A stretch of DNA of 64,000 bases from NCBI GenBank assembly GCA_965112735.1, contig OZ218957.1, positions 2,976,001 through 3,040,000 of the forward strand. Reading direction: 5' to 3'. The translations under genes were made by a program, and so were the position numbers. This stretch comes from Phaeosaccion multiseriatum (lineage: Eukaryota > Protista > Ochrophyta, other classes). Below are positions 28,862 to 47,568 of the stretch, in pieces (the first letter of the stretch is position 1; the number at the start of each line of letters is the position of its first letter). A model generated the notes under the pieces. It was not told the DNA's origin. It made no database searches and worked only from the letters and a program-made list of their open reading frames with translations.

Positions 28862-30225
28862 AGGAGGGGAGAAGGGGAGAGAGAAGGTGAGGGGACCTGC
28901 AAAAGAGGGGAAGAAACCAAGAAGGATGTGGTCGCCCACGCACATTCACCCACCCAAACCCACCCACCCCACCCATCCACCCACACCCATACCCACTCAT
29001 CCACCCACCCACCCATCCACCCACGCACGCACCGCCCTACTCACCCACTCACCTACCCACCCACCCACCTACTCACCCACCCACCTACTCACCCACCCAT
29101 GCACGCACCCACGCACCCACCTGTAGAGCGAGACTTCGGTCCTTCGCACGTCTTCTCTGAGCATCTTTACGAAGGAGTGGAACTCTCCTGTGGTGATGGT
29201 CTTGCTCCCGTCCTCGCCAAACCACGCCCTACGAAGGTTAGCGCTGCCCCCCAAAGCACTGGAAGCCGACCCTCCTCCATCAGGGCTGCCTCCTCCTCCT
29301 CCTCCTCCTCCTCCTCCTGCTCCTCCTTCTCCTCCTCCTCCGTCGGTTCCTGCGTGCTTCAGTAGCTGATTCGTGACCTGCAGCATGCAACAGTGGTCAG
29401 GGAAATGTTTCAGTTTCTTGATTGACCTCGATAGCAGTATCGAACACAACATGGTAGAGAACCAACGCGCGAACCTATCCCCTAACCTGTGACCTAACCC
29501 CTAACCTGTGTGAACTCGTCCAGAGTGATGACGCCGTCGCCGTCTGCATCAATCACGGCCAAGGCCACGTCAAAGTGTTCGGCGGGGATGGCCAGGAGAG
29601 ACACTAGGAAGCTGAACTCCTGTCTGGAGATGAGGCCACTCGCATTGCCGAGCAACTCGTTCCTGTATCGATTGCATCTCCGTCGGATCTCCTTGGCGGG
29701 CAGGCGGGTGAAGGTGTAGGCCAGCATGGATTGCATAAAGTCGCCGCTCGTCATAAAGTGAGAGCCGTCGTTGAATTGGGCGGAGGCGTACTTTGAAAAC
29801 ACGTGGTCGAGAGTGGTAAGGGTAAGGAGGCGGCTCTGATAGTCTCCCACTGCTTCTTCGCTGCTCTTGCTCGCTCCACCCCCCCCCCCTTTGCATAGCA
29901 CCACCCCCCCCCCTCCCGTCACTGCGTACTGTTGGTCCCCCGAGCGGCTTGCTGCAAATGCAGCCGCTCCTGCTGCTGCCGCTGTTGCCAGCGCCGCTGC
30001 CCACTGCTGCCCCTGCTTCCCTTTGCCGGTGTATGACGACGACGACAACAGGGAGGACGCTCGTGGCGCAATCTTAGCAGTTACCTCTACTGCAGCAGCT
30101 CTTACTGCTGCTGTCTCGTCTCTTGAGATGTTTCTGGGCGTCCAGCGCGCCGGGTGGGCAGCATGGGAGCACGCCGCACGAAAGGCGATCCGTTGGCCAA
30201 TGAACAATCCAACACGCCCCTGCAT
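27594..30225 (-). CDS. Mitochondrial calcium uptake protein (MICU-like EF-hand protein)
   Basis: Five exons with an Arg/Ala-rich presequence. DYQSRLLTLTTLDHVFSKYAS...FMTSGDFM resembles the MICU N-domain. GLISRQEFSFLVSLLAIP, EF-hand DADGDGVITLDEF, and DFARAVKVVTGRSLS...LFDESGDGVLDYPEL (last EF-hand). Confidence 0.88.
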
Positions 30226-30768
30226 CTGCTGGCGCGGCTGCTCCCCTCTCCCAGAGAAAGCCCCAGCACCTCTCCTCAGGGTGTCCTTACCGCAAGCCGA
30301 ATAAGACCTCCGCATCGTAACCCTTGCAGAGAAAAAGGGAAAGGTGAAAGGGGAAAGGGGAGAGGGAGAAAGAAACCTCGGCGTGGAAACCTCGTCCGAC
30401 GGTTACAGAAACGCACACAAAAAAGTCAGCATGTGTGTGTGTGTTGCCCCCCAACCCAACCCAACACCCCTGAAACACTCCGGGACCTGTATCGGGGTCC
30501 CAAAGAAACAGACAGGGCGTTTTTTCGTGTGAACCAACCTCTCTCTCTGTGTGTGCACCAAACGACGACAACAGGGAGCAGTAACAGGAGGAGCCGCGGG
30601 AGGAGCAGCAGCACAAGAGGAGCACTTGAGCACCAGGAGCACCATGACAGCAGGAGAAAAGAGACCTCTTGCTTAAGAAACGGCCAAGGAGAGACAACAT
30701 AGAAACAAAAATAGGACCGTGGTGCCCTTCAGTGCTCACTGAGGGCTGCACACGAAACGGCGGGCCCA

Positions 30769-33700
30769 ATGAGTGATGCTGGTGCAGTGCCGGGGATGAG
30801 GAGTCCTGATGCGATGCTCTCCGCAAGAGATACTGAAAACATAGCACCTCGTAAGCCCGTTCTATCCCCTCTGCCTCGTCGCCCAGTGGCTGATGGAGAA
30901 GGCAAGGAAGACAGCCTGAAGGCGGCGCCCCTACAGCAGGAGACGGAGAAAGAACCCGTAGAGCGGAACGACAGGAGTAGTGAGACAGACCTTTCTGCAG
31001 CTGGTGATACTACCGGCGAGGTTAAGGAAGGGCTATTGCCCGCGGTTGCCCCAGCGCCTTCTCAGAGCGGTGAGTGCCAAAGTCTACTCCATGGGTGCAT
31101 GTCCCAACGCCACGTCCCAGCAGGTTTCTATCGCCAGAGCGATTCTGCTAGCGTAGCACCACAGGGAGGTTATATGAACGAGCTACTTGCTTACTCCCCC
31201 CCTCCCGTCTCCCCGTCCCCCCCCCCCCTCCGATCGATTCATCAGAGGGAGGGCAGGAGCCTCTCGAGGTCAACGCGATGAGAAGTGAGCCCGAGTTTTC
31301 CGGAGCTGGTGACACAGTCAGTGAGCTGAAGGCAGGGCTATTGCCTGCTAATGCCCAAAGAAGTTGTAAGGGTGAGTGCCAAACTCGGGAGGGGTGCATG
31401 TTCATCCCTGCACCCACCACCAGGCTTCTAGTTCTATCGCTCCCCTCGCCCCGCATCGCCCTCTTCTCAGTCGAGCGGCCTCCTCTTCTGCCTAGCGAGT
31501 GTGCTAACACAACACTGAGGAGCGATTCACGTGTCCTCCCCTCCTGATCCCTCCCCCCCCCCCCTCGGCTCGATCCATCAGAGGGATGGCGGCCGCTGAG
31601 CGCTAAAGAGTCGCGTAGGGAGAAGGCGACGTCTGGCTCTCCCTCCTCTCCCTTACAAGACACCCTGTTCACTGAGAGTGAAAGCGCTTACAGCGAAAGA
31701 AACAACGGAGCGGCCAAGCGTATCGGGCGCAGTGCCGAGGTACCAGCGAGGGGCGGCACCACAGCAGAAAGGGTGGGTGGGGTGGGTGGGGTCGGAGGCT
31801 TCCTGATGGGTGTCATCAGGAGGAAGAGACCCGGTGGCGCTGGCCATAAGCAGGATGAGCCGAGCCAAACGATGGACGACTCTACTTACAGGGCGAGTAG
31901 TAACGACCCTCATTCTGGACACAGCGCGAGCTTACGCGGTGGTAGTGGTGGTGGGGCGAGGGACAAGAGCGTCGTAGGAGGGGCCGAGGGAGTCCTAGCG
32001 CGGGCACGGCGGCACATACGAAGCAGCCACGGCTCCGCCGACCATAGAGCTCGGGATAAAGCCGCCGCTGTAAGGAGGAAATTCAAGCAGCCCGTCAAGC
32101 CAAGATTGTAAGTGCAGTGCCCGCAAGCAAGCGCTGCTGAGTCTCCTCGCCTCTCCCTCTCCCTCTCCCTCTCCCTCTCCCCCTCCCTCTCCCTCTCCCT
32201 CTCCCCCTCCCTCCCTCCCACCCTCCCTCTCTCCCTCCCTCTCTCTCCCCCTCCCTCCCTCTCCCCCTCCCCCCGGTATCCCCTCCCCCCCCCTGCCCCT
32301 TCTCCTCTTCCCTTCGATCTGATTCTGCCTCTTCTTCTGCGTACCCCATCCCTTTGCTCCCCCCCCCCCAACCTAACCCGATCGAATGCTGTCCTTGCCC
32401 TGCACAGGAAAATCTGTGCCCTGTTTTGGGTGCTCCAAGCTACCATCCTGGCCGTTATCTTCGTGACAATAGTACAGTTTGATAAAAACATACTGACGCT
32501 CTATCTTCAAGGCATTGAGGAGCACCTCGGAGGGCTCAGTCTCGCCTATCAAATGAAGGTAGGTACTGCTTACGTATTGGTCTAGCACGCCTTACTTACC
32601 TTGTTTGTTACATACCCCATGACATGATGGAAGATTTGAATCGATTCTGATGTGATTTGCCACTGGGTTAGTGTTGTGTTGCTGATGTTGGGTTGCATGC
32701 ATCGAGGGTTGAGCCGCTGGACTGAATCCTGTGCATGACTGCTTCTCCCTCTTCCCTCCTTCGTCCATTCCCCCCTCGCTGCCTGCCTGTCTGTCGATCT
32801 GTCCGCCTATCTACCCTCCTGCTCATATGCCTGCCCCTACACCTGCCCACCTACCTGTACGCCTGCGTACTTTGTTCTCCTTGTGCCCATGTGGCTTGCG
32901 TCAGGTGCACCAAGCCGGCTTTGGCTTTGGTTCCATGGCTGCAGGCGACATCAACATCATAACAGCCCTCGAGTCATTAAACTCGACCCTCTATCCTTAT
33001 ATCGAGGCCGAGCTAAACTCAGAGCTTGAGTCCAGGCAATTAGAGTTCTCAATGATGCTAGGGGCAGACATGGTACGTAACGGTACATAACAGTGCACAT
33101 GTTGTGCGTGTGTGTGTGCGCGCGTAAGTGTGTGTAGATGTGCTTGTGCGTGTGTACGTGTGTGTTTCTGTAACCACACACCACCTACCCCACCCCACAG
33201 ACCATCTTAGCTACAGGAACAGGTGCGAACACCACCGGAGAGGTGTTCGATCCCAATGGGGTTGTCTCTCTGGCTAGGCAAACGTACGAGGACAGCGGAA
33301 CCGTACAGGTTGGTGATTTGGTGTGATGATGTGGAGATGAGTGTTGCTGTCACCAAAGTTATACTTCATTTGTATAAGAGAGGTCTCTGCCAGGGTGCTC
33401 TGACAGGGCAATCCACTCGGGGGGAGAGCCTTCCCATCAAGATCCACAATGTCGATACCGATTCGCAATGTCGATCCTGATCATCCCAAACCTGATCCCC
33501 TGATAAATTGGAGCCGAAACTTGATTGATGGGTTGGTTGGTTGTTTGGTTGATTGGTTGGCTGATTGATTGGTTGATTGGTTGAATTACTTTTTGTTTTG
33601 TTTTTTGTTTTTGTTTTGTTGTTGTTGTTTTACTGTTTGCTGATTTGTTTGTTTGATTGGATAAATTGATTTTTTCTTTTCTAATTGAAATTCTGACAGA

Positions 33701-33956
33701 TAAAGAAGAACACGATGGTGACGGAGGCCCTGCTGGACCATCACAACGCGCCCCAGTGGAGAGAGAGGGGTTCCATCACCAACCCCGCTCTCAAGGAGCT
33801 TCATCCATACGACTCCTCCTCAGGCATAGGCCTCATCAGGTGGGTTGCAGTAAGTCAGTGGGCTACAGTAAGTTAGTGGATGGTGGGTGGGTAACTACGG
33901 TACTAAGCGTAGGTAAAGGGCTCTCTGACCTTCCTCTGCATGACCATCCATGACTG

Positions 33957-34044
<88 letters not shown>

Positions 34045-34553
34045 ACCACACACACAACCCCACACACAACCACACACACAACCACACACACAGGTATACG
34101 GTATCCATAGTGAAGAACTCCAACGACACCGAGGTCACGGGCTTCCTCGTCAGTGGAGACCTCGTAACGGGCAAGTTGGGCATCGTCGCCGCCATCTACG
34201 AAACTCTCTGGGCAGGCACCTCCTCCACTCTAGAGGACGGTTACGTTGGAGTCTATCTCAACGAAGAGACCGACCCGGACGGTGAGTGTCAGGACAGAGG
34301 GTGGAGTGGGAGGGATGGGTGCATAGGTGTCAGGACAGAGGGTGCGGGTGGTTTCAGTTTCAGTTTGACGGGTACTTGGCGGTCGCTTTGAAAAAAGAGG
34401 CTGACCTCCTCCCCTCCCCTCCCCTTTCCTCCCCTCATGACAGAGGAAGACTCATGGGCCCCAGCTACATCCGCAGCCGTCATCTCCCCACAGACCTTCG
34501 ACGGCGTAAGCATTCTCGCTGTGGAGCCCTCCCCCTTCTCCTCCCCGGGCGAG

Positions 34554-34584
<31 letters not shown>

Positions 34585-37500
34585 TGTGCGTGCATGAGTG
34601 TGTGTGTGCGTGTGCGTGTGCGTGTGCGTGTGTGGGTGTGCGTGAGCGTGTGCGTGCGTGTGTGTGTGCGTGCGTGCGTGTGTGCGTGTGCGTGCGTGCG
34701 TGTGTGCGCGTTCAGCCATGGGTGGTCATATTGCGGGAGATCAGCGAAGGTCCTGGGGGGTCTCCACTGCCGTTTGTGATACCGTACTCTCTCACACACA
34801 CACATTCCTCCCCCCCTTCCTCTCCCCTCCCCTGTATCACCAACTTAGTCACCTGACTCAGATCTCTTCCGTAAGGCAGTCAGTGGGGGTACTTTCGACA
34901 CCTCCGTCGTCACCCACTTCGATCGTGCCCACGGGATGATGTATGCAGCTACAAGGGTCTTCTCCTTTGGATGGGGAGAAGTGGAAGACTTTGGTGATGT
35001 GGGTGACACATTTGGCGACGATTTGTTGGCCGAACCGGAGGCCTTGCTCGTCCGCGGTGTGCACTGTTCCATGTGGCCTGATGCTACCAGGGTCAGCGTT
35101 CTCTTTGCAGTGGGCATGTTCATGATTGACTGCTTCACTCTCTTTCTCGTGTTGCTGCTGTTCTTGACTCCGCTCGAGAATATGGGCAAGCGGATCCGTA
35201 TGGTACGTGGGTGCGTGCGTGGAGGGGAGGGGGGGGGAGGGGAGGGGGGGGGGAGGGGAGGGGAGGGGAGGGGAGGGGAGGGGAGGCTGTTCTTGTTCTG
35301 TTTGTCCTGTCTCGTTTTTCTCTCGCTCTCTGCCTCCCTGTCCCCTTTTTCTCTCGCTCTCTGCCTCCCTGTCCCCCTCACCCCCTCCCTCTCCTCTCTT
35401 CTCCTCTCCTCTCCTCTCCTCTCCTCTCCTCTCCTTTCCTCTCCTCTCCTCTCCTCTCCTCTCTTCTCTTCTCCTCTCCTCTCCTCTCCTCTCCTCTCCT
35501 CTCCTCTCCTCTCCTCTCCTCTCCTCTCCTCTCCTCTCCTCTCCTCTCCTCTCCTCTCCTCTCCTCTCCTCTCCTCTCCTCTCCTCTCCTCTCCTCTCCT
35601 CTCCTCTCCTCTCCTCTCCTCTCCTCTCCTCTCCCCTCCTCTCCTCTCCTCTCCTCTCCTCTCCTCTCCTCTCCTCTCCTCTCCTCTCCTCTCCTCTCCT
35701 CTCCTCTCCTCTCCTCTCCTCTCCTCTCCTCTCCTCTCCTCTCCTCTCCTCTCCTCTCCTCTCCTCTCCTCTCCTCTCCTCTCCTCTCCTCTCCTCTCCT
35801 CTCTTCTCCTCTCTTCTCCTCTCCTCTCCTCTCCTCTCCTCTCCTCCCCTCCCTCCCTCCCCTCCCCCCCTCCCTCCCTCCCTCCCCTACCAGGGCGCCA
35901 AACTCGACCCAAAGTACACAGAACGCCTCCACAAACGGCGGAAAGTTCTCGTCTATGTAATGATGATCGGCTCTCTCTCCTTCGGCCTCGCCATTGCGCA
36001 AGTGGCGTGGTCGAAGCGACACATCCAGTCGATGCTGAGTTCCCGCAGCAAGAACGATCCGGCCATCACTGCGCTTACGTACAACTTTAAACTCGACCAG
36101 ATCCGCTTGGGCTTTACCACAACGGGTCATTCCAAGGCTATGTCAGCGCTAGCTCTGGCTGCTGCTGCAGTGACGAATAGCGAAAACCCGGAGGATGAGA
36201 GTATCTACGACAACGAGGGTGAGAGTGGGAGGGAGAGGAGGGAGGGGAGGGAGAGGAGGGAGAGGAGGGAGAGGAGGGAGAGGAGGGAGAGGAGGGAGAG
36301 GAAGGAGGGGAGGGAGAGGAGGGAGGGGAGGGAGAGGAGGGAGGGGAAGGAGCGGAAGGAGGGGAAGGGAAGGGGAGGCAAGGGGAGGGAGGGAGGGAAG
36401 ATAGAGTGTACCTTGTCCTGACACTCGGATTGGTCCTGACACCCCTGCTGACAATCATAACACAGAACTTCTCGCGGACGTGGAGTCGAAGTTGGCGTTT
36501 CAGATGACGCTTCGCAAGATCGAAATGGCCGTGTTTTTGGACGTCAATGCGAGGGTCCTCGCCTGGGGCAATCACACCACAGCGTAAGTGTCTTACGTAT
36601 GTCTTACGTATGTCTTGTGTATGAGTCTTCGTGAGTGCCTTATGTGCCGTTTGTGTTTCGTACGCGTCACGGGGATCCTTGTGCATCATCCTGTCTCTGC
36701 TTCTCTGCCCTTCTCTCCCCATGACGCTCTCTCTAATCCTCTCCCTCTCTCTATCTTCCTCTCTCTCTCCCTCCCTCCCTCCCTCCCTCCCTCCCCTCCC
36801 TCCCTCCCTCCCTCCCTCCCTCCCTCCCCTCCCCCAGGGAAATCCAAGGCACCTCCTACGACCCTCTGGCAGTGGTATCCACCGTCGTCAACACGAACGC
36901 CGCTTGTACCCGAAGTGGCGTCCTCCACCACACCGACGTCGACCCGTCCATCATACCCCACTTCCACCCCTTCTCGGAACCCCTCAACACCGATCTCGAT
37001 CCTTCCACCCTCAACATTGACCCAGACACACACCCCTACTTCCTGGCCCGTGTGGTGGGTATCCCTGTTTACGGAGAGGGGAATGAAGGCGCCAAACAAC
37101 CCGATGCGGTGCTCTTGGCCATGGACATGGTCGACGGAAAGACCGCCATTCCAGAGCGAAGCAACCTCATGCTGGGGCGTGGCTATAGCGCTGTGTACAC
37201 TTACAATGAGGACGATGCGACTCAGCCCAAGTACATTCTCAGCTCCGGAGCGCTCATGGAGGATGGTGTCAATATTGCGGTGAGTTTCCAGTGTGAGGTT
37301 GAGGTTGACTTGAAGTTTGAAAGGTTGCATTGAAGTTTCGTGTGTACGCGCGCGTATGAAGGAGAGCGCCGCCTCCGCGCTTGCCTTCCGTGGTGATGGG
37401 CACTGCTCTCCTTCTTTGCTTGCCTGCTCGTGCCCTTTCCCCTCAACTTCGTTGTCCCTCCGTACCTGAGCTGATGCCGATGCCTCCTCTCCTATTTGTA

Positions 37501-38040
37501 CCTCCCCCCCTCCCCCCTGCTCCTCCTCCTCCCCCTCCTCTTCCCCCTCCCCCTCCCCTTCCCCCTCCCCCTCCCTACCATCTCCTCTCTAATACGAGAA
37601 AGATTGACTACCCCTACGGAGGTGAGAAAGACCTTGAAAAACTGTTTGGGGGACTTCAAGAGAGCCCCTCCATGACGACTTTCGAACGTGTTCGTATCGG
37701 TGGAGAGGAAGCTTTCGCCGCAGGCCGTTGCATACCCCAGGACTATGTGCAGGTCGGTTGGTTTCTTCCATTTGGGTTTGTTCAGATCCGATACGATCGA
37801 ATCCATATCGGTTCATGGGTGTTTGAAGGTCACGTAAACTGAAACATGAAAGCTGATGGATAGCGTCGAGAAGTTGAGTCCAAGTCAGGGCACGGTTGGA
37901 TCCTCCTGAGTCTTCAGACGCTGCTCCATTAGAGCAAGCACAGAAGCTTCGATACCGACTCCAAGTATGGGTGTTCGGTGTTGATGAGGTCCTCAACTGA
38001 CTGACTGACTGACTGACTGACTGACTGACTGACTGACTGC

Positions 38041-38077
<37 letters not shown>

Positions 38078-39716
38078 TGACTGACTCACTGACTGACTGA
38101 CTGACCGACTCACTGACTGACTGACTGACTCACTGACTGCCTGACTGCCTGACTGACTGACTGACTGACTGACTGACTGCCTGACTGACTCACTGATTCA
38201 CTGACTGACTGACTGATTCACTGACTGACTGACTGACCGACTGACTGACTGACTGCCTGACTGACTCACTGACTGACTGACTGACTGACTGACTGCCTGA
38301 CTGACTGACTGACTGACTGACTGACTGACTGACTGCCTGACTGACTGACTGCCTGACTGACTGACTGACTGACTGCCTGACTGACCGACTGACTGACTGA
38401 CTGACTGACTGACTGACTGACTGACTGCTGACTGACTGACTGACTGCTCTCTCTCTATACTGTTTCGTGCTGTGCCTTGCTGTGTACAGGGGCTGGGTGA
38501 CGCAGGAAAAATCTATGACACTCGAACCCAAGGGTGTCCTGCCTTCATAATCCAGGCCATGCCGTACTCGAATGTTAGCCACGAGGTGAGAGCGAACAGA
38601 TTGGTGGGATCATGGGAAGAATCAGAGGAGAGGGAGAGGGATGGAGGGAGGGAGGGAGGGAGAGGGGGAGAGAGAGAGAGAAAGAAAGAACGAGCGAGAA
38701 GAGAGAGAGTTTCTTTCCTTGACCCCGCACCCCGCCCCCCTCCCCCCCCCCCCTCCCCCCCTCCCCTCCGTCCCTTCCTCCTTTTGTCCCTTCTCCCCCC
38801 TCCCCTCCCCCCTCCTCCCTCTCTTGTGTGTCCTTCGCTCCCTTCGCCCATCCAAAACACACACCAAAACCGCACCATGGACAGATGAATCTCATATTTC
38901 TTTGGGAGATGATTGGACTCGTGGCCCATTTCTTCAAACTATTATGTATATGCGGGCTCTGCTACCTCACCTTTTTGCCGTTTCAGAAGATTGTGGGTAA
39001 GAGTAACAGCAGCGTCTCCGGCCGCAGCGTTGGTGCCAGCCCCTCCATGACGACAGGACTGGGAGACAGCAACTCGCGGTACAGCTGGGTGAAGAACACT
39101 TTCCGTCGGGGCAGGGGAGGCAGGGGCGAGGTGTCGGCAAAAAACTTATTCAAAGGTGAGAGTATGTAGGGCAGGGTGGGTGAGTGGATGGATGGATGGG
39201 TGGGTGGGTGGTTAGGTGGATGGTTAGGTGGGTAGGTGGGTGGGTGGGTGGGTGGGATGTGGGTGTGTGGGTGGGTAGGTGGGTGGGTGAGTGGGTGGGT
39301 AGGTGGGTGGGTAGGTGGGTGGGTAGGTGGGTGGGTAGGTGGATGGGTAGGTGGGTGGGTTGGTCGGTCGGTCGGTCGGTCAGTCAGTGAAGAGCCGTCT
39401 TCTCGTATCCCTAACCCTAATCACCCCCTCCCTCCACACCTCTTCACGACCACGCCACCACCACCACCACCACCACCACCCCGCCGCTCCCCACCGCTGC
39501 TACCGCCGCTGCTGTATCGCCAACTTCTTGGCTCTCTCTGCCCGTCAAACAACATCAGGAGGCTCCCAAAAGCGTATCCTTCCCGTCAGTGTGGGACCCC
39601 CCGTCGCCCAGGCCAGCCCCCCCCCCCTCCTCCCCCCCCTCTCCCCCCCCCTCGCCATCGGCACCTCACCAGGGGCTGGGGCGAAAACAGCAGAAGGGGC
39701 GGTAACCTCCTCGTAG
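30769..39716 (+). CDS. 17-exon 4-TM membrane protein with two tandem extracellular Cache-like domains of cyanobacterial chemoreceptor type
   Basis: Exons 30769-31069, 31246-31371, 31582-32107, 32408-32558, 32905-33072, 33201-33308, 33700-33839, 34094-34281, 34444-34553, 34849-35202, 35894-36218, 36466-36583, 36838-37279, 37603-37752, 38490-38585, 38885-39155 and ~39559-39716 join in frame at GT-AG. Four hydrophobic segments flank two internally homologous domains. Confidence 0.8.
33959..34090. repeat. (CA)n microsatellite running up to an intron acceptor
   Basis: Read directly; it occupies the position of the polypyrimidine tract. Confidence 0.9.
35390..35850. repeat. (CTCCT)n microsatellite, intronic
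   Basis: Read directly. Confidence 0.95.
37836..37997 (-). mobile_element. Possible 5'-truncated non-LTR retrotransposon 3' end inside an intron
   Basis: The minus strand reads a short ORF end ([22 protein letters not shown]-stop), ~75 nt of unique sequence, then a TTTCATGTTTCAGTTT tail. No RT motif is visible. Confidence 0.3.
37997..38445. repeat. (CTGA)n microsatellite, intronic
   Basis: Read directly. The same repeat appears as (GTCA)n at ~51587-51825. Confidence 0.95.
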
Positions 39717-40188
39717 TTCAGGGGCTGTGGATATATATACACAAAACATAGGAATCAACCTAAGAACTAGAGTGCTTCCCGCCCTGGATGGATGGGTGGG
39801 TGGATGGTGCGTGGGAAAGGGATTTAAAAAAAAAGGTACATATTAGTACTTCGTAAAACATAAAAAACAAGAAAAGGAAAACCCCACAACCCGACGTGCG
39901 GACCTTCTCACTCCATGTGGGTGCGTGCGCGCATCCATCGGCCACTCGATGCCCCTCCTCCCTCACAACTCTGATGAGTGCCCCCCCCCCCCCCCCTCCG
40001 TTTAGGCCGTCGCCAGGCTCCCTTCCCAACGCCCTGACAGTAACATCTTACGGCAGGCGAGAGGCACGCCTTTCATCCGCCCCTTTCACCCCTTCTCAGA
40101 CGTCACATCCTGAAGCACCTCTTGGGCCTCATTGGGCCTCATTGGGCCTCATTGGGTCTGATGGGGCCTGCTTGGGCCTAATTGGGCC

Positions 40189-41637
40189 TCATGGGGGCAG
40201 CGTGTTCAGAAAGTCCACCATGTGAGGCGCCAGCTGCTTGCGGCTCTTTTGCACATTGCCCTGTTGGTAGTACAGAAAGTATTCCTTCCTTCCTCCTCCT
40301 CCTCCTGCTGCTGCTGCTGACCCCCCCTCCTCCCTCCGCTGTGGCAGCTCCACAGCCCCCTCCAACACCAGCCCCACCCCCTCCTCCTCCCCCCTCCCCC
40401 CCCCTACTCTTACGAGACGCAAGTAGCTACAAGGCCCCTCCGGATCCGCAAGATACACCTCCAACTTACGCAACATACGGGCATTTCCACCAAGCACAAT
40501 CAACTCTCTCTTGGGCTCGGGCACCAGGCAGAAAGTCTGAATCATAAACAGGTCAATGTCATCGTGGTCTTCTCGCCACTGCTTCACAGCCTCGATCAGG
40601 CCCTTCTTCTCAACCATCTCCCGGGCGGGGCACAGTACCACGCTAATGCCCAGAGTGAGCGTCTTCTTCAGACTCGTGCTCCTGCTCTCGCTATTACTCT
40701 CGCGCCCACTGCTCTCACTCTTCTTCCCTTGCTGCTGCTGCTGCTGCTGCTGTTGCTGTATCACCACCTCTTGCACTTGCTGTTGCGCTGGTGTGTCGCT
40801 GTGGAAGAGCTTAAAGTCATATTTGAGACAGTCGCTTGGTTGCAGTGCAGACCAGAAGGAAGGGCTGAACTTGGCCTGCGAGAGCTTCTCAAACAAAGTA
40901 TCTGCCTGTGTATCGCGGGAGGGGAGGGAGGGAAGGAGAGAGAGAGAGAAGAGATAGGCGGGGGGGAGAATGAGAGAGGGAGAGAGACGGGGGGGGGGGG
41001 GAGAAGGCAGGGGCTGGGGCAGATAGACGAGAGAGGAGAGGAGAGAGAAGGAAGCGCAGGAGTGGGACGTCCACCCCTGGGGCAATCAATGAATACATAG
41101 ACATACGTAATCTTACCTTGACTCCGGGCAAGCGTGCCAAGAGAGCGTCTCGGGCGGCAATGTCTCTGCTTGTGGTCCTGCCCGCCGCGGGGCTGAAGCC
41201 TACGGTATCGATGCTCATGACGCCCAGCAGGAGCAGGCACACGTCCCGAGTGAGGAGGAGAGAGCACGAAGGAGAGGAAGGGGAAGAGGAAGAAGCACTC
41301 TCTGCTGCCAGGAAGCGCTCAGCCACCTTTGATGTCATGTCATGTGAGGTGAAATGGAGAAGGAAGAGAGAGGAGAGAGAGAGAGAGAGACTCTTGTTCG
41401 GTGAAATACACTCTGATGTAGGAACGGTCCATGATTCTAATAGACATGTAGGGTGGACACACCGCAAGGGTTGTGGGGTAGTGCACGCAGTGTACACATA
41501 CGTATGTCATCCGTAGTATTTCGCGTTGCTTCATTGGGCTTTACTCTTATCGTTTGCGGGTGGGTAAGCCAATGACCTAGAAACATATACACACGTATAC
41601 ACACACACTCACGCACACACCCCAACCCCCTAAACAA

Positions 41638-41687
<50 letters not shown>

Positions 41688-42684
41688 AGTGCTTGGTACT
41701 TGCCTGAGTGCAGCATGACCCCACCAAGGGCACGTTCTCCTCATCGCTGAAGGCAATGTCCCGCCACGCCCCCCCCACCTCTGGCCTGTGCTTGCCGAGG
41801 TCCTTGTGGTGGTCGACAATCTCCACCACGGGGATGGAACAGCTCGGGCCAGCCCCATTGCCACCAGCATCAGCACCGGCATCGGCATCGGCATGACAGT
41901 CGAGATGATGAGTGCTCTTGTCCACTACCGCCGCATTGTGGTCGGTGAGAATGAGCTTGACCCCCCCCCCATGGCCGGACCCGGCCCCACTGCTGCCGTC
42001 GTCACCATGGCTGCTTTCTGCTTGTGCTGCGTCGTCATCACTACCAGCTACAAGAAGCATGGACTGGTGCAAGGCGTTAAGGTCGAGTTCGTCGGAGAAA
42101 AGCAAGTCAGCCGGGTCGAGAGCCGCCATCTCGAACAACAAGAGGGTCTCTCTCCGGAGGGCGAAGTCTGCGCGAGGAATGGGCATGATGGGCGTGTATA
42201 GCACTCTTCTTGTACTCGCCCCTGCCCTCTCTCCTCCTCCTCCCCCCTCTTCTCCCAGCTTCTGCTGATCCAGCTGCTGCTGCTGCTGCTTGAGGTAAGC
42301 CAGCAGCATGGAGCTGATCATAGTGTCCGCATCCCCAGCTTCATTGCCGCGGACGGCATACACAGCTGTCCTCCTCCGTGAGGGAACAGCAGTCCCCCCC
42401 CTCTTCGCTGCTGCAGCTGTCTCCGACTCGAGATTCAGAATGTCTCTCCTCACACCCTTGAGATAGGAGGGGAGCCCAGACTGACCAGATGTCTCCTCCA
42501 TGGCCGATCCTGCTGCCAAGGCAGAGGCGACTAGGCCCCTCTTCGGGCCACACCGGCTGCTATTCGTGAAGATCCTCACACTGTTGCTGCAAGCAGTGCT
42601 ACTGCTTAGGAGCAAAGCGGACAGGGCACGCGGCCGGGAGAGAGAGAAGATGGAGAGAAACACAGCAGGCAAGATGCCATTCAT
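40189..42684 (-). CDS. Exopolyphosphatase / Prune-like DHH-DHHA2 phosphoesterase
   Basis: Three exons. Motifs: GNEAGDADT, ILTDHN, EIVDHH, VGSCCTQV, LLLGVMSIDT, DCLKYDFKLF, QGNVQKSRKQLAP. The first intron is GC-AG. Confidence 0.92.

Positions 42685-42909: not shown

Positions 42910-47568
<4,659 letters not shown>

Follow-up and report, generated by a model that had tools for sequence, protein, structure and literature searches.

A tandem double-Cache membrane protein without an output domain in Phaeosaccion multiseriatum, probably a single-chain sensor of cyanobacterial type

What can a membrane receptor do when no output domain follows its sensors? The question is raised by an intron-rich gene of the alga Phaeosaccion multiseriatum on the + strand at about 30769-39169 of the 64,000-nucleotide stretch analysed here (the window; GCA_965112735.1, contig OZ218957.1, positions 2,976,001 to 3,040,000), spliced on the basis of profile colinearity together with GT/AG and frame analysis. 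A preliminary description had read the locus, from its letters alone, as an output-less receptor with four transmembrane (TM) helices and two tandem sensor domains of a kind known from cyanobacterial chemoreceptors. Our follow-up leads to a related answer, to which we assign a probability of about 0.6: this nuclear gene of the alga encodes, as one chain, a 'pseudo-dimer' of a transmembrane sensor of cyanobacterial type, which has no enzymatic output and would be read by a partner.

The product is ordered as TM1, domain A, TM2, a basic loop, TM3, domain B, TM4 and a basic tail. Four hydropathy peaks (32418-32480, 35092-35166, 35945-36010 and 38891-38977) mark the helices and, together with a colinear match to a profile of the family described below, confirm the spliced order that had been proposed. 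The loop between TM2 and TM3 consists of 29 residues with 10 Lys or Arg and 3 Asp or Glu, and the tail after TM4 has 11 and 3, respectively. Because of the positive-inside rule, loop and tail are predicted to be cytoplasmic and A and B to face outward or into a lumen, each as an extracytoplasmic domain held between two TM helices. Six N-x-S/T sequons lie in A and B. A signal peptide, with plastid targeting in mind, was not visible on reading the hydrophilic N-tails of the window frame and of P0001, a relative from Chrysoparadoxa australica.

Domains A and B are homologous, as had been claimed. They align by BLASTP over 180 residues with 23% identity (E 4e-5), a single cyanobacterial profile matches both, and six motif pairs, all on the + strand, run through them. 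The first pair joins LAYQMK and VHQAGFGF in A, where an intron splits the motif (32558/32905), to a 14-residue counterpart in B at 36074-36115. The second (13 residues each, 33022-33060 in A and 36501-36539 in B) and the third (11 residues each, 33237-33269 and 36848-36880) are followed by LIR/YTVSIV in A, split at 33839/34094, paired with LARVVGIPV in B (37043-37069). The fifth pair has 10 residues in each half (34146-34175 and 37112-37141), and the sixth sets GYVGVY (34239-34256) against GYSAVY (37181-37198). Residues that are invariant in cyanobacteria are present in both domains, namely Tyr, Lys and Gln in the stalk, Glu in IEY, FDP..V, Arg in LIR, Asp in SGD and Lys in NGK; for the final Tyr of GYSAVY an aligned counterpart is found in B alone. 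Both halves are evidently under constraint.

The origin of these residues became apparent when a profile of four algal proteins matched the N-terminal periplasmic domain of P0015, a bacterial protein of the HAMP-GGDEF-EAL type (E 1.8e-21). This domain contains YNIKIDQMGFGF, RDIEYATLV, FDPNELVS, LIRYTLTPV and LISGDIVNQK. A search with the P0015 sensor domain returned 910 proteins at E 0.001 or better. The best 120 of the 910 contain MCPsignal with HAMP (in many cases also GAF, and in some with a PixJ or PilJ label), histidine kinases, PAS plus kinase, or GGDEF/EAL, and the organism names given among them are all cyanobacterial except one, Sericytochromatia, a sister group. From the first 400 residues of these 120 proteins we built a cyanobacterial profile and, with the database size set to one million, searched the spliced product, which matched at E 1.5e-34. 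By independent E-value, domain A matched at 1.4e-19 and the first part of domain B at 2.2e-6; against a member of the family from MMETSP the profile reached E 9e-91. The preliminary description had likened the motif blocks to those of methyl-accepting chemotaxis proteins (MCPs) of cyanobacteria. The blocks are indeed present in the P0015 domain, but that domain is not chemoreceptor-specific, because the best 120 also include histidine-kinase and GGDEF/EAL proteins.

The gene belongs to a small algal family. A whole-library HMMER search of 1.84 billion cluster representatives with the largest exon (36839-37291) yielded 14 relatives: hypothetical proteins of Chrysoparadoxa australica (CAM9430082.1) and Tribonema minus (KAG5180076.1, KAG5186007.1 and KAG5184511.1), transcripts of Tribonema gayanum, one MMETSP transcript, two proteins of Chromera velia (Cvel_10364 and Cvel_13727), and metagenome and Logan sequences. 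The algal relatives are annotated only as hypothetical proteins. End to end, the window product aligns with P0016 of Tribonema minus (28.5% over 855 columns, E 8e-77) and with P0001 (27.8%, E 4.5e-74), and in both full-length alignments A pairs with A and B with B. The same TM1-A-TM2-loop-TM3-B-TM4 order is found in the full-length relatives from Chrysoparadoxa, Tribonema, the MMETSP transcript and a Logan contig. Among ten algal members with a scorable TM2 region, all have the motif PLExMG[KR] after TM2, and seven have [YF]xPFxxI after TM4. The window product carries both of these membrane-adjacent motifs of the four-TM, tandem-dCache family, in addition to the colinear order. Neither motif was found in the two Chromera proteins, whose likeness is looser.

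The first of these motifs bears on what had been called a HAMP-like start after TM2. In P0001, P0007 and P0016 the alignment of domain A with the cyanobacterial sensors continues through TM2 into the first HAMP positions, so that PLExMG is the counterpart of the bacterial 'KPIENL' HAMP start. The feature is thus a conserved family motif, and to it we add its match after TM4.

Other searches contributed little. A word-index protein search with the largest exon found nothing, which has little weight since its library was limited to proteins of 83-264 residues; an ESM Atlas search by features gave scores of ≤0.81, noise only; and NCBIfam offered nothing useful.

The exon model on which these comparisons depend was obtained by scanning a profile of five full-length or near-full-length algal relatives over all stop-to-stop fragments, and the matches to exon fragments were strictly colinear with the profile. 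Motif blocks were read in a three-frame translation of the + strand from 30700 to 39800. Counted from the TM1 exon, the model has 13 exons, over which the frame is intact, and 12 introns of 134-691 nt, all GT..AG; the spliced product from TM1 onward has 891 residues. The exons and the two candidate extensions, with their support, are as follows.

30769-31281, + strand: putative first exon, or N-tail open frame, from the ATG of the preliminary description; in the open reading frame list, hydrophilic, Pfam blank; unverified.
32409-32558, + strand: exon encoding TM1 (32418-32480) and, after it, the beginning of the domain A stalk helix (LAYQMK); family profile 81-132, E 8.5e-6; hydropathy peak; donor GTAGGT.
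32905-33082, + strand: domain A exon from VHQAGFGF through the 13-residue motif; family profile 132-185; alternative donor/acceptor 33072/33201 possible.
33217-33308, + strand: domain A exon with the 11-residue motif; family profile 191-214, E 4.7e-5.
33700-33839, + strand: domain A exon whose last residue, R, is shared with the next exon; family profile 218-270, E 7e-10.
34094-34281, + strand: domain A exon starting at the (R) of LIR; family profile 271-314; best single fragment for the cyanobacterial profile, E 1e-10.
34444-34520, + strand: small domain A exon ending in DGVSILA; placed by frame and splice-site analysis, without family-profile support.
34849-35202, + strand: membrane-near module of domain A, TM2 (35092-35166) and the HAMP-start remnant (35170-35202); family profile 390-467, E 2.9e-12; motif and charge analysis; alternative acceptor 34876 possible.
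35894-36218, + strand: remainder of the basic loop on the cytoplasmic side, TM3 (35945-36010) and the stalk helix of domain B; family profile 476-557, E 2.3e-13.
36466-36583, + strand: domain B exon with the 13-residue motif; family-profile match at the equivalent positions of domain A, E 4e-4.
36838-37279, + strand: largest exon, far (membrane-distal) module of domain B; family profile 595-736, E 5.4e-36.
37603-37833, + strand: membrane-near module of domain B; colinear, weak family-profile match, E 7.2; alternative donor 37818 possible.
38490-38585, + strand: last strand of domain B; family profile 798-823, E 0.003; acceptor GTACAG and donor GTGAGA, both phase 0.
38885-39169, + strand: TM4 (38891-38977), PFQKI motif (38978-38992), basic tail and stop (39167-39169), the coding part ending at 39166; family profile 827-863, E 1e-4; motifs.
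39170-39716, + strand: C-tail extension of the preliminary description, low complexity, reachable only via donor 39155; many in-frame acceptors, none distinguishable; Pfam blank; unverified.

By our own comparison of translations, which carries no tool score, the exon at 37603-37833 is paralogous to the domain A stretch from 34849 onward. The acceptor at 32408 in front of the TM1 exon implies that the start codon comes from an exon farther upstream. Of the tails proposed earlier, the N-tail from 30769 and any C-tail beyond the stop at 39167-39169 are putative; the exon at 38490-38585 is an addition. An open stretch in frame 2 at 33407-33531 was rejected as an exon and assigned to an intron, since it has no family match and the family profile places 33700-33839 there. 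Bacterial contamination was rejected on account of the 12 spliceosomal-type introns and the eukaryotic neighbour genes.

The window is ~58% G+C and rich in microsatellites, and it holds only one copy of the family. The presumed N-tail region contains a tandem duplication of ~305-336 bp with 70-88% identity (copies at 30952-31254 and 31257-31590). Both copies are open, in different frames, and the N-tail may therefore hold repeated units split by an intron. Simple repeats occupy introns and flanks: a CT-rich array at 35380-35880 reads (SSPLL)n in all frames, and (CA)n, a (TGAC)-type array and a GGT/GGG array lie among 33960-34090, 37950-38450 and 39180-39390.

No output domain was found. Pfam was blank on the exons, the 30769 frame, 31773-32111, and the frames 39351-39716 and 39896-40225, and likewise, at E 0.01 or better, on 10/10 scanned relatives, including Tribonema gayanum and MMETSP transcripts. 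The MCP signalling domain (PF00015) is absent from the window exons, the other open frames at the locus and the relatives. Pfam HAMP was not detected in the window exons or the relatives; of HAMP, only an 11-residue start remains within the 29-residue loop. The claim that MCP, kinase and cyclase outputs are missing is accordingly sustained for the exons, the intervening open frames and the relatives, a set that includes transcripts.

The locus is flanked by genes of the opposite strand. On the 5' side an EF-hand gene (29494-30315, - strand), whose product is rich in alanine and glycine in its N-terminal region, begins with its 5' end at 30315. On the 3' side a DHH/DHHA2 gene (40189-42684, - strand) matches Pfam DHHA2 at E 9.5e-7, and a DHH-type motif is visible in its upstream open reading frame at 41686-42684, which suggests an exopolyphosphatase or Prune-like phosphoesterase. 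Farther along, open frames at 43597-46000 on the + strand encode peptides that may belong to a leucine carboxyl methyltransferase-type enzyme. None of this neighbourhood is shared with Chrysoparadoxa, whose family gene has 32 exons and 31 introns, compared with 12 introns in the window model, and at most one intron position coincides. On the Chrysoparadoxa australica contig (L001, 12065-20776) the family gene is followed by a same-strand protein-kinase gene (863 residues). This is probably a coincidence, as the window has no such neighbour, but the kinase is still a candidate partner.

The fold was modelled in P0001. A full-length model built from a 59-row alignment had a mean predicted local distance difference test (pLDDT) score of 77 and a predicted template-modelling (pTM) score of 0.72, with most of domain B and the far module of domain A above 90 pLDDT. 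Foldseek against the PDB gave DvhD, DctB, Tlp3, PctB, vpHK1S-Z8, TlpA, TlpC ('dCACHE') and Mlp24 as leading matches at probability 1.00. For domain B (model residues 509-821), VIA-align scored whole dCache chains at Z 13-16 over alignments of 210-248 residues, while the single-Cache sensors CitA and DcuS fit the far module only. Folded alone, domain A reached pLDDT 79.6 and pTM 0.77, and an exhaustive VIA-align search of 48,161 chains ranked Cache-type sensor domains at positions 1-45, among them DctB (Z 15.1), KinD (14.8), PscC (14.4) and Tlp3 (14.3); the CHASE domain of AHK4 scored Z 12.1 and Cachd1 Z 8.7. By shape, the nearest entries in the ESM Atlas were cyanobacterial kinases and chemoreceptors (TM-score 0.67-0.76 over 342-385 residues). 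In the models, A and B of P0001 are both double-Cache domains, that is, a stalk helix with two PAS-like modules, and end-to-end homology with P0001 is our reason for extending the predicted fold to the window protein. In an alignment (A2) of 59 rows, 43 of them cyanobacterial, 34 rows match Pfam dCache_3 (PF14827, clan CL0165; E up to 0.1, best 3.3e-10) and 31 match sCache_3_3. Taken together with the two modelled domains, the dCache_3 matches uphold the Cache-like fold that had been proposed.

Eight algal A, ten algal B and 40 cyanobacterial domains, the last sampled only around P0015, were placed in a quick maximum-likelihood tree. In this unrooted tree a single branch sets off each of the three sets, A, B and the cyanobacterial domains, from the rest (supports 93, 99 and 97). 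The A subtree mirrors the B subtree, and the window protein pairs with Chrysoparadoxa in both (85 and 98). Because the three sets group separately and the algal subtrees are mirrored, we conclude that the tandem duplication predates the sampled algal members. An internal duplication had been proposed for the window gene; it is present, but it is common to the whole algal family rather than peculiar to this gene. A single acquisition is the simplest reading of the tree, and its source may have been endosymbiotic or horizontal transfer, which the data do not separate. At the sequence level, a phase-0 intron lies right after the homologous peptides DGVSILA (A, 34520/34521) and DGVNIA (B, 37279/37280). 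The two introns could descend from one older than the internal duplication, or their matching places could be a coincidence. The Chrysoparadoxa gene has no intron exactly at this point.

How might such a chain work? We propose that the ancestral unit consisted of a TM helix, a dCache_3-like double-Cache domain, a second TM helix and the first turns of a HAMP linker, and that it was truncated right after the second helix and duplicated in tandem before the sampled algae diverged. In the window product each of the two sensor units ends in a TM helix followed by a HAMP-start remnant. In TM2 an Asp (35128-35130) precedes the Pro of PLE by 14 residues, and an acidic residue, Asp or Glu, is likewise found at -14 from the HAMP-start Pro in TM2 of the cyanobacterial sensors. 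TM4 carries a Lys (38936-38938) 14 residues before PF; Lys is found there, and the pair kept, in 8/10 algal members. P0001 has Gln and Arg at the two positions instead of Asp and Lys; in the MMETSP member TM2 keeps the Asp and TM4 lacks a basic residue. A single-chain mimic of a dimer would fit the buried Asp and Lys at equivalent positions, and the pTM of 0.72 for P0001 would fit a defined arrangement of the two halves.

The layout would then be two ligand-binding domains on the outer or lumenal side, four TM helices, and short basic segments as the only cytoplasmic part. The four helices are probably packed like the four-helix bundle of a bacterial receptor dimer, with TM2 and TM4 in place of its two signalling helices and the Asp-Lys pair as a lock. 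Binding of a small molecule in a far module would displace TM2 or TM4, and the membrane-adjacent segments (PLExMG[KR] and PFxKI) would relay this displacement to a separate partner protein, which we propose because the chain carries no enzymatic output. Small-molecule binding by A and B is a candidate function that is suggested by the conservation of the invariant residues. A bolder form of this reading, in which the family is a new eukaryotic receptor class, a single-chain asymmetric dCache 'dimer' whose output is a movement of the four-helix bundle read by an obligate partner (channel, transporter or kinase) or by a self-assembled ligand-gated pore, is offered as speculation and we regard it as quite unlikely; it would make the family a route of algal chemosensing unrelated to G protein-coupled receptors, receptor kinases and two-component systems.

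Several points weigh against the partner-read sensor. The fold work was done by proxy, on the closest full-length relative, which is ~28% identical end to end. Residues 311-424 of that model are poor, with the membrane-near module of domain A at pLDDT 40-70, and the helix packing and the Asp-Lys contact come from sequence and pTM, not from coordinates. A PDB sequence profile search found no solved structure related to the family. The algal proteins fall below every Pfam Cache cut-off, the best being dCache_1 for P0001 (E 0.012, 15.6 bits against a cut-off of 45), and neither the window exons nor the 10 algal relatives gave a Pfam Cache match. To our knowledge, no ligand is recorded for the cyanobacterial domain or the algal family. 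The tree is quick, unrooted and long-branched, with uneven cyanobacterial sampling. In the gene model three junctions are ambiguous (33072/33201 or 33082/33217, acceptor 34849 or 34876, donor 37818 or 37833), as are both ends, where exon(s) lie 5' of acceptor 32408 and donor 39155 is available at the 3' end. Four sequencing runs covering the stretch are colinear genomic contigs without splice joints (36400-37900), and none of the runs listed for it is recorded as RNA.

The alternative that survives best, though we judge it unlikely, is that of an auxiliary subunit, a ligand-binding protein permanently attached to a channel or transporter and tuning its trafficking or activity in the manner of alpha2-delta or CACHD1. 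A chain without an output domain and with very little cytoplasmic mass invites this view, Cachd1 is among the fold matches (Z 8.7), and alpha2-delta proteins, which are channel subunits, have two dCache_1 domains (PMC9901441, PMC8915833). However, only the fold is shared, with no further homology to alpha2-delta. The VWA insertion reported for all eukaryotic dCache_1 proteins (PMC8915833) is absent here, neither VWA nor VGCC_alpha2 having matched the window exons or the relatives. The retained TM-domain-TM units and HAMP-start motifs point instead to transmembrane signalling. The two readings also overlap, since both require a partner.

We consider it very unlikely that the gene is what is left of a bacterial sensor after transfer, with its output lost and no sensing role, either as a decaying gene or as a structural protein of the membrane or cell surface. 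Decay would be in keeping with the long branches and ~28% identity to the closest relative, with the poorly modelled membrane-near module of domain A in P0001, and with the purely genomic runs recorded for this alga's stretch. Against this, the frame is intact over 13 exons and the cyanobacteria-invariant residues stand in both halves; the architecture and membrane-adjacent motifs are kept in Tribonema, Chrysoparadoxa and the MMETSP species, and transcripts of relatives exist.

A gene-model artefact is extremely unlikely. Such an error would mean that an output domain lies on a missed exon or that the halves are two adjacent genes, and the ambiguous N-terminal 1.6 kb and 3' end, with no RNA runs listed, leave some room for it. 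That room is bounded by the opposite-strand genes at 30315 and 40189, between which no open frame matches any Pfam family, and relatives known from transcripts, ~900-940 residues long, are built as the same chain of two domains without an output. Conservation of both the length and the motif of the TM2-TM3 loop shows that the fusion is real. Equally unlikely, lastly, is a self-contained device, a ligand-gated channel or carrier formed by assembly of the four-helix units, in which the dCache domains would serve as gate sensors. Although conserved charged residues are buried in TM2 and TM4 and no other output is present, neither sequence nor fold matched any channel or transporter, the TM2 Asp is inherited from ordinary cyanobacterial sensors, and the Asp-Lys pair is more simply a helix-packing lock.

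The family matters beyond this alga. Eukaryotic Cache domains are few, as reported by Upadhyay et al. (PMC4822843), and are largely confined to alpha2-delta/CACHD1 and a few kinases such as cytokinin receptors and Sln1 (PMC4822843, PMC8915833). Gumerov et al. found the VWA insertion in every eukaryotic dCache_1 protein and dated that design to about the last eukaryotic common ancestor (PMC8915833). The algal family represents a separate, apparently later acquisition of Cache domains from the cyanobacterial lineage, with an architecture not seen in bacteria: two receptor protomers in one chain and no output. Should ligands be sensed, it would be an undescribed algal way of reading the chemical surroundings. 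It would also provide a natural asymmetric, single-chain model for the long-standing question of how TM helices move in dCache receptors, because the halves can be mutated separately here, which is impossible in a homodimer. In addition, it draws attention to a large cyanobacterial sensor domain without a solved structure or known ligand. Our literature search found no paper linking Cache domains to these algae and no characterised eukaryotic family of this architecture; the novelty is in the reading of the family and not in its sequences, which are already public as hypothetical proteins.

Among known systems, the closest are the cyanobacterial sensors of the PixJ/PilJ, HAMP-kinase and GGDEF/EAL types. 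With these the algal protein shares the succession of a TM helix, a stalk helix, two PAS-like modules, a TM helix and a Pro-x-x-x-[LM] HAMP start, as well as the invariant residues and an acidic residue at -14 in TM2. The cyanobacterial proteins have one sensor per chain, form homodimers and always continue into HAMP and an output domain, whereas in the algal protein a single chain holds two sensors and breaks off after the first HAMP residues; its second unit has Lys in place of the acidic residue, and its gene is nuclear and rich in introns. The alpha2-delta/CACHD1 proteins of animals and protists are likewise eukaryotic membrane proteins with two outward double-Cache domains and no enzymatic output, and they act via partners (PMC8915833, PMC9901441). 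The animal ones modulate channels or Wnt receptors. They differ from the algal family in belonging to the dCache_1 family, with nested domains, an inserted VWA and one anchor, while the algal domains are in tandem, VWA-less and held by four TM helices; the algal family has so far been found in few algae, and Gumerov et al. place the origin of alpha2-delta/CACHD1 at about the last eukaryotic common ancestor. The plant cytokinin receptor AHK4, with its CHASE domain (fold Z 12.1), offers a third likeness, a bacterial-type double-PAS extracytoplasmic sensor placed between TM helices in a photosynthetic eukaryote, but AHK4 has kept its histidine-kinase output and carries one sensor per chain.

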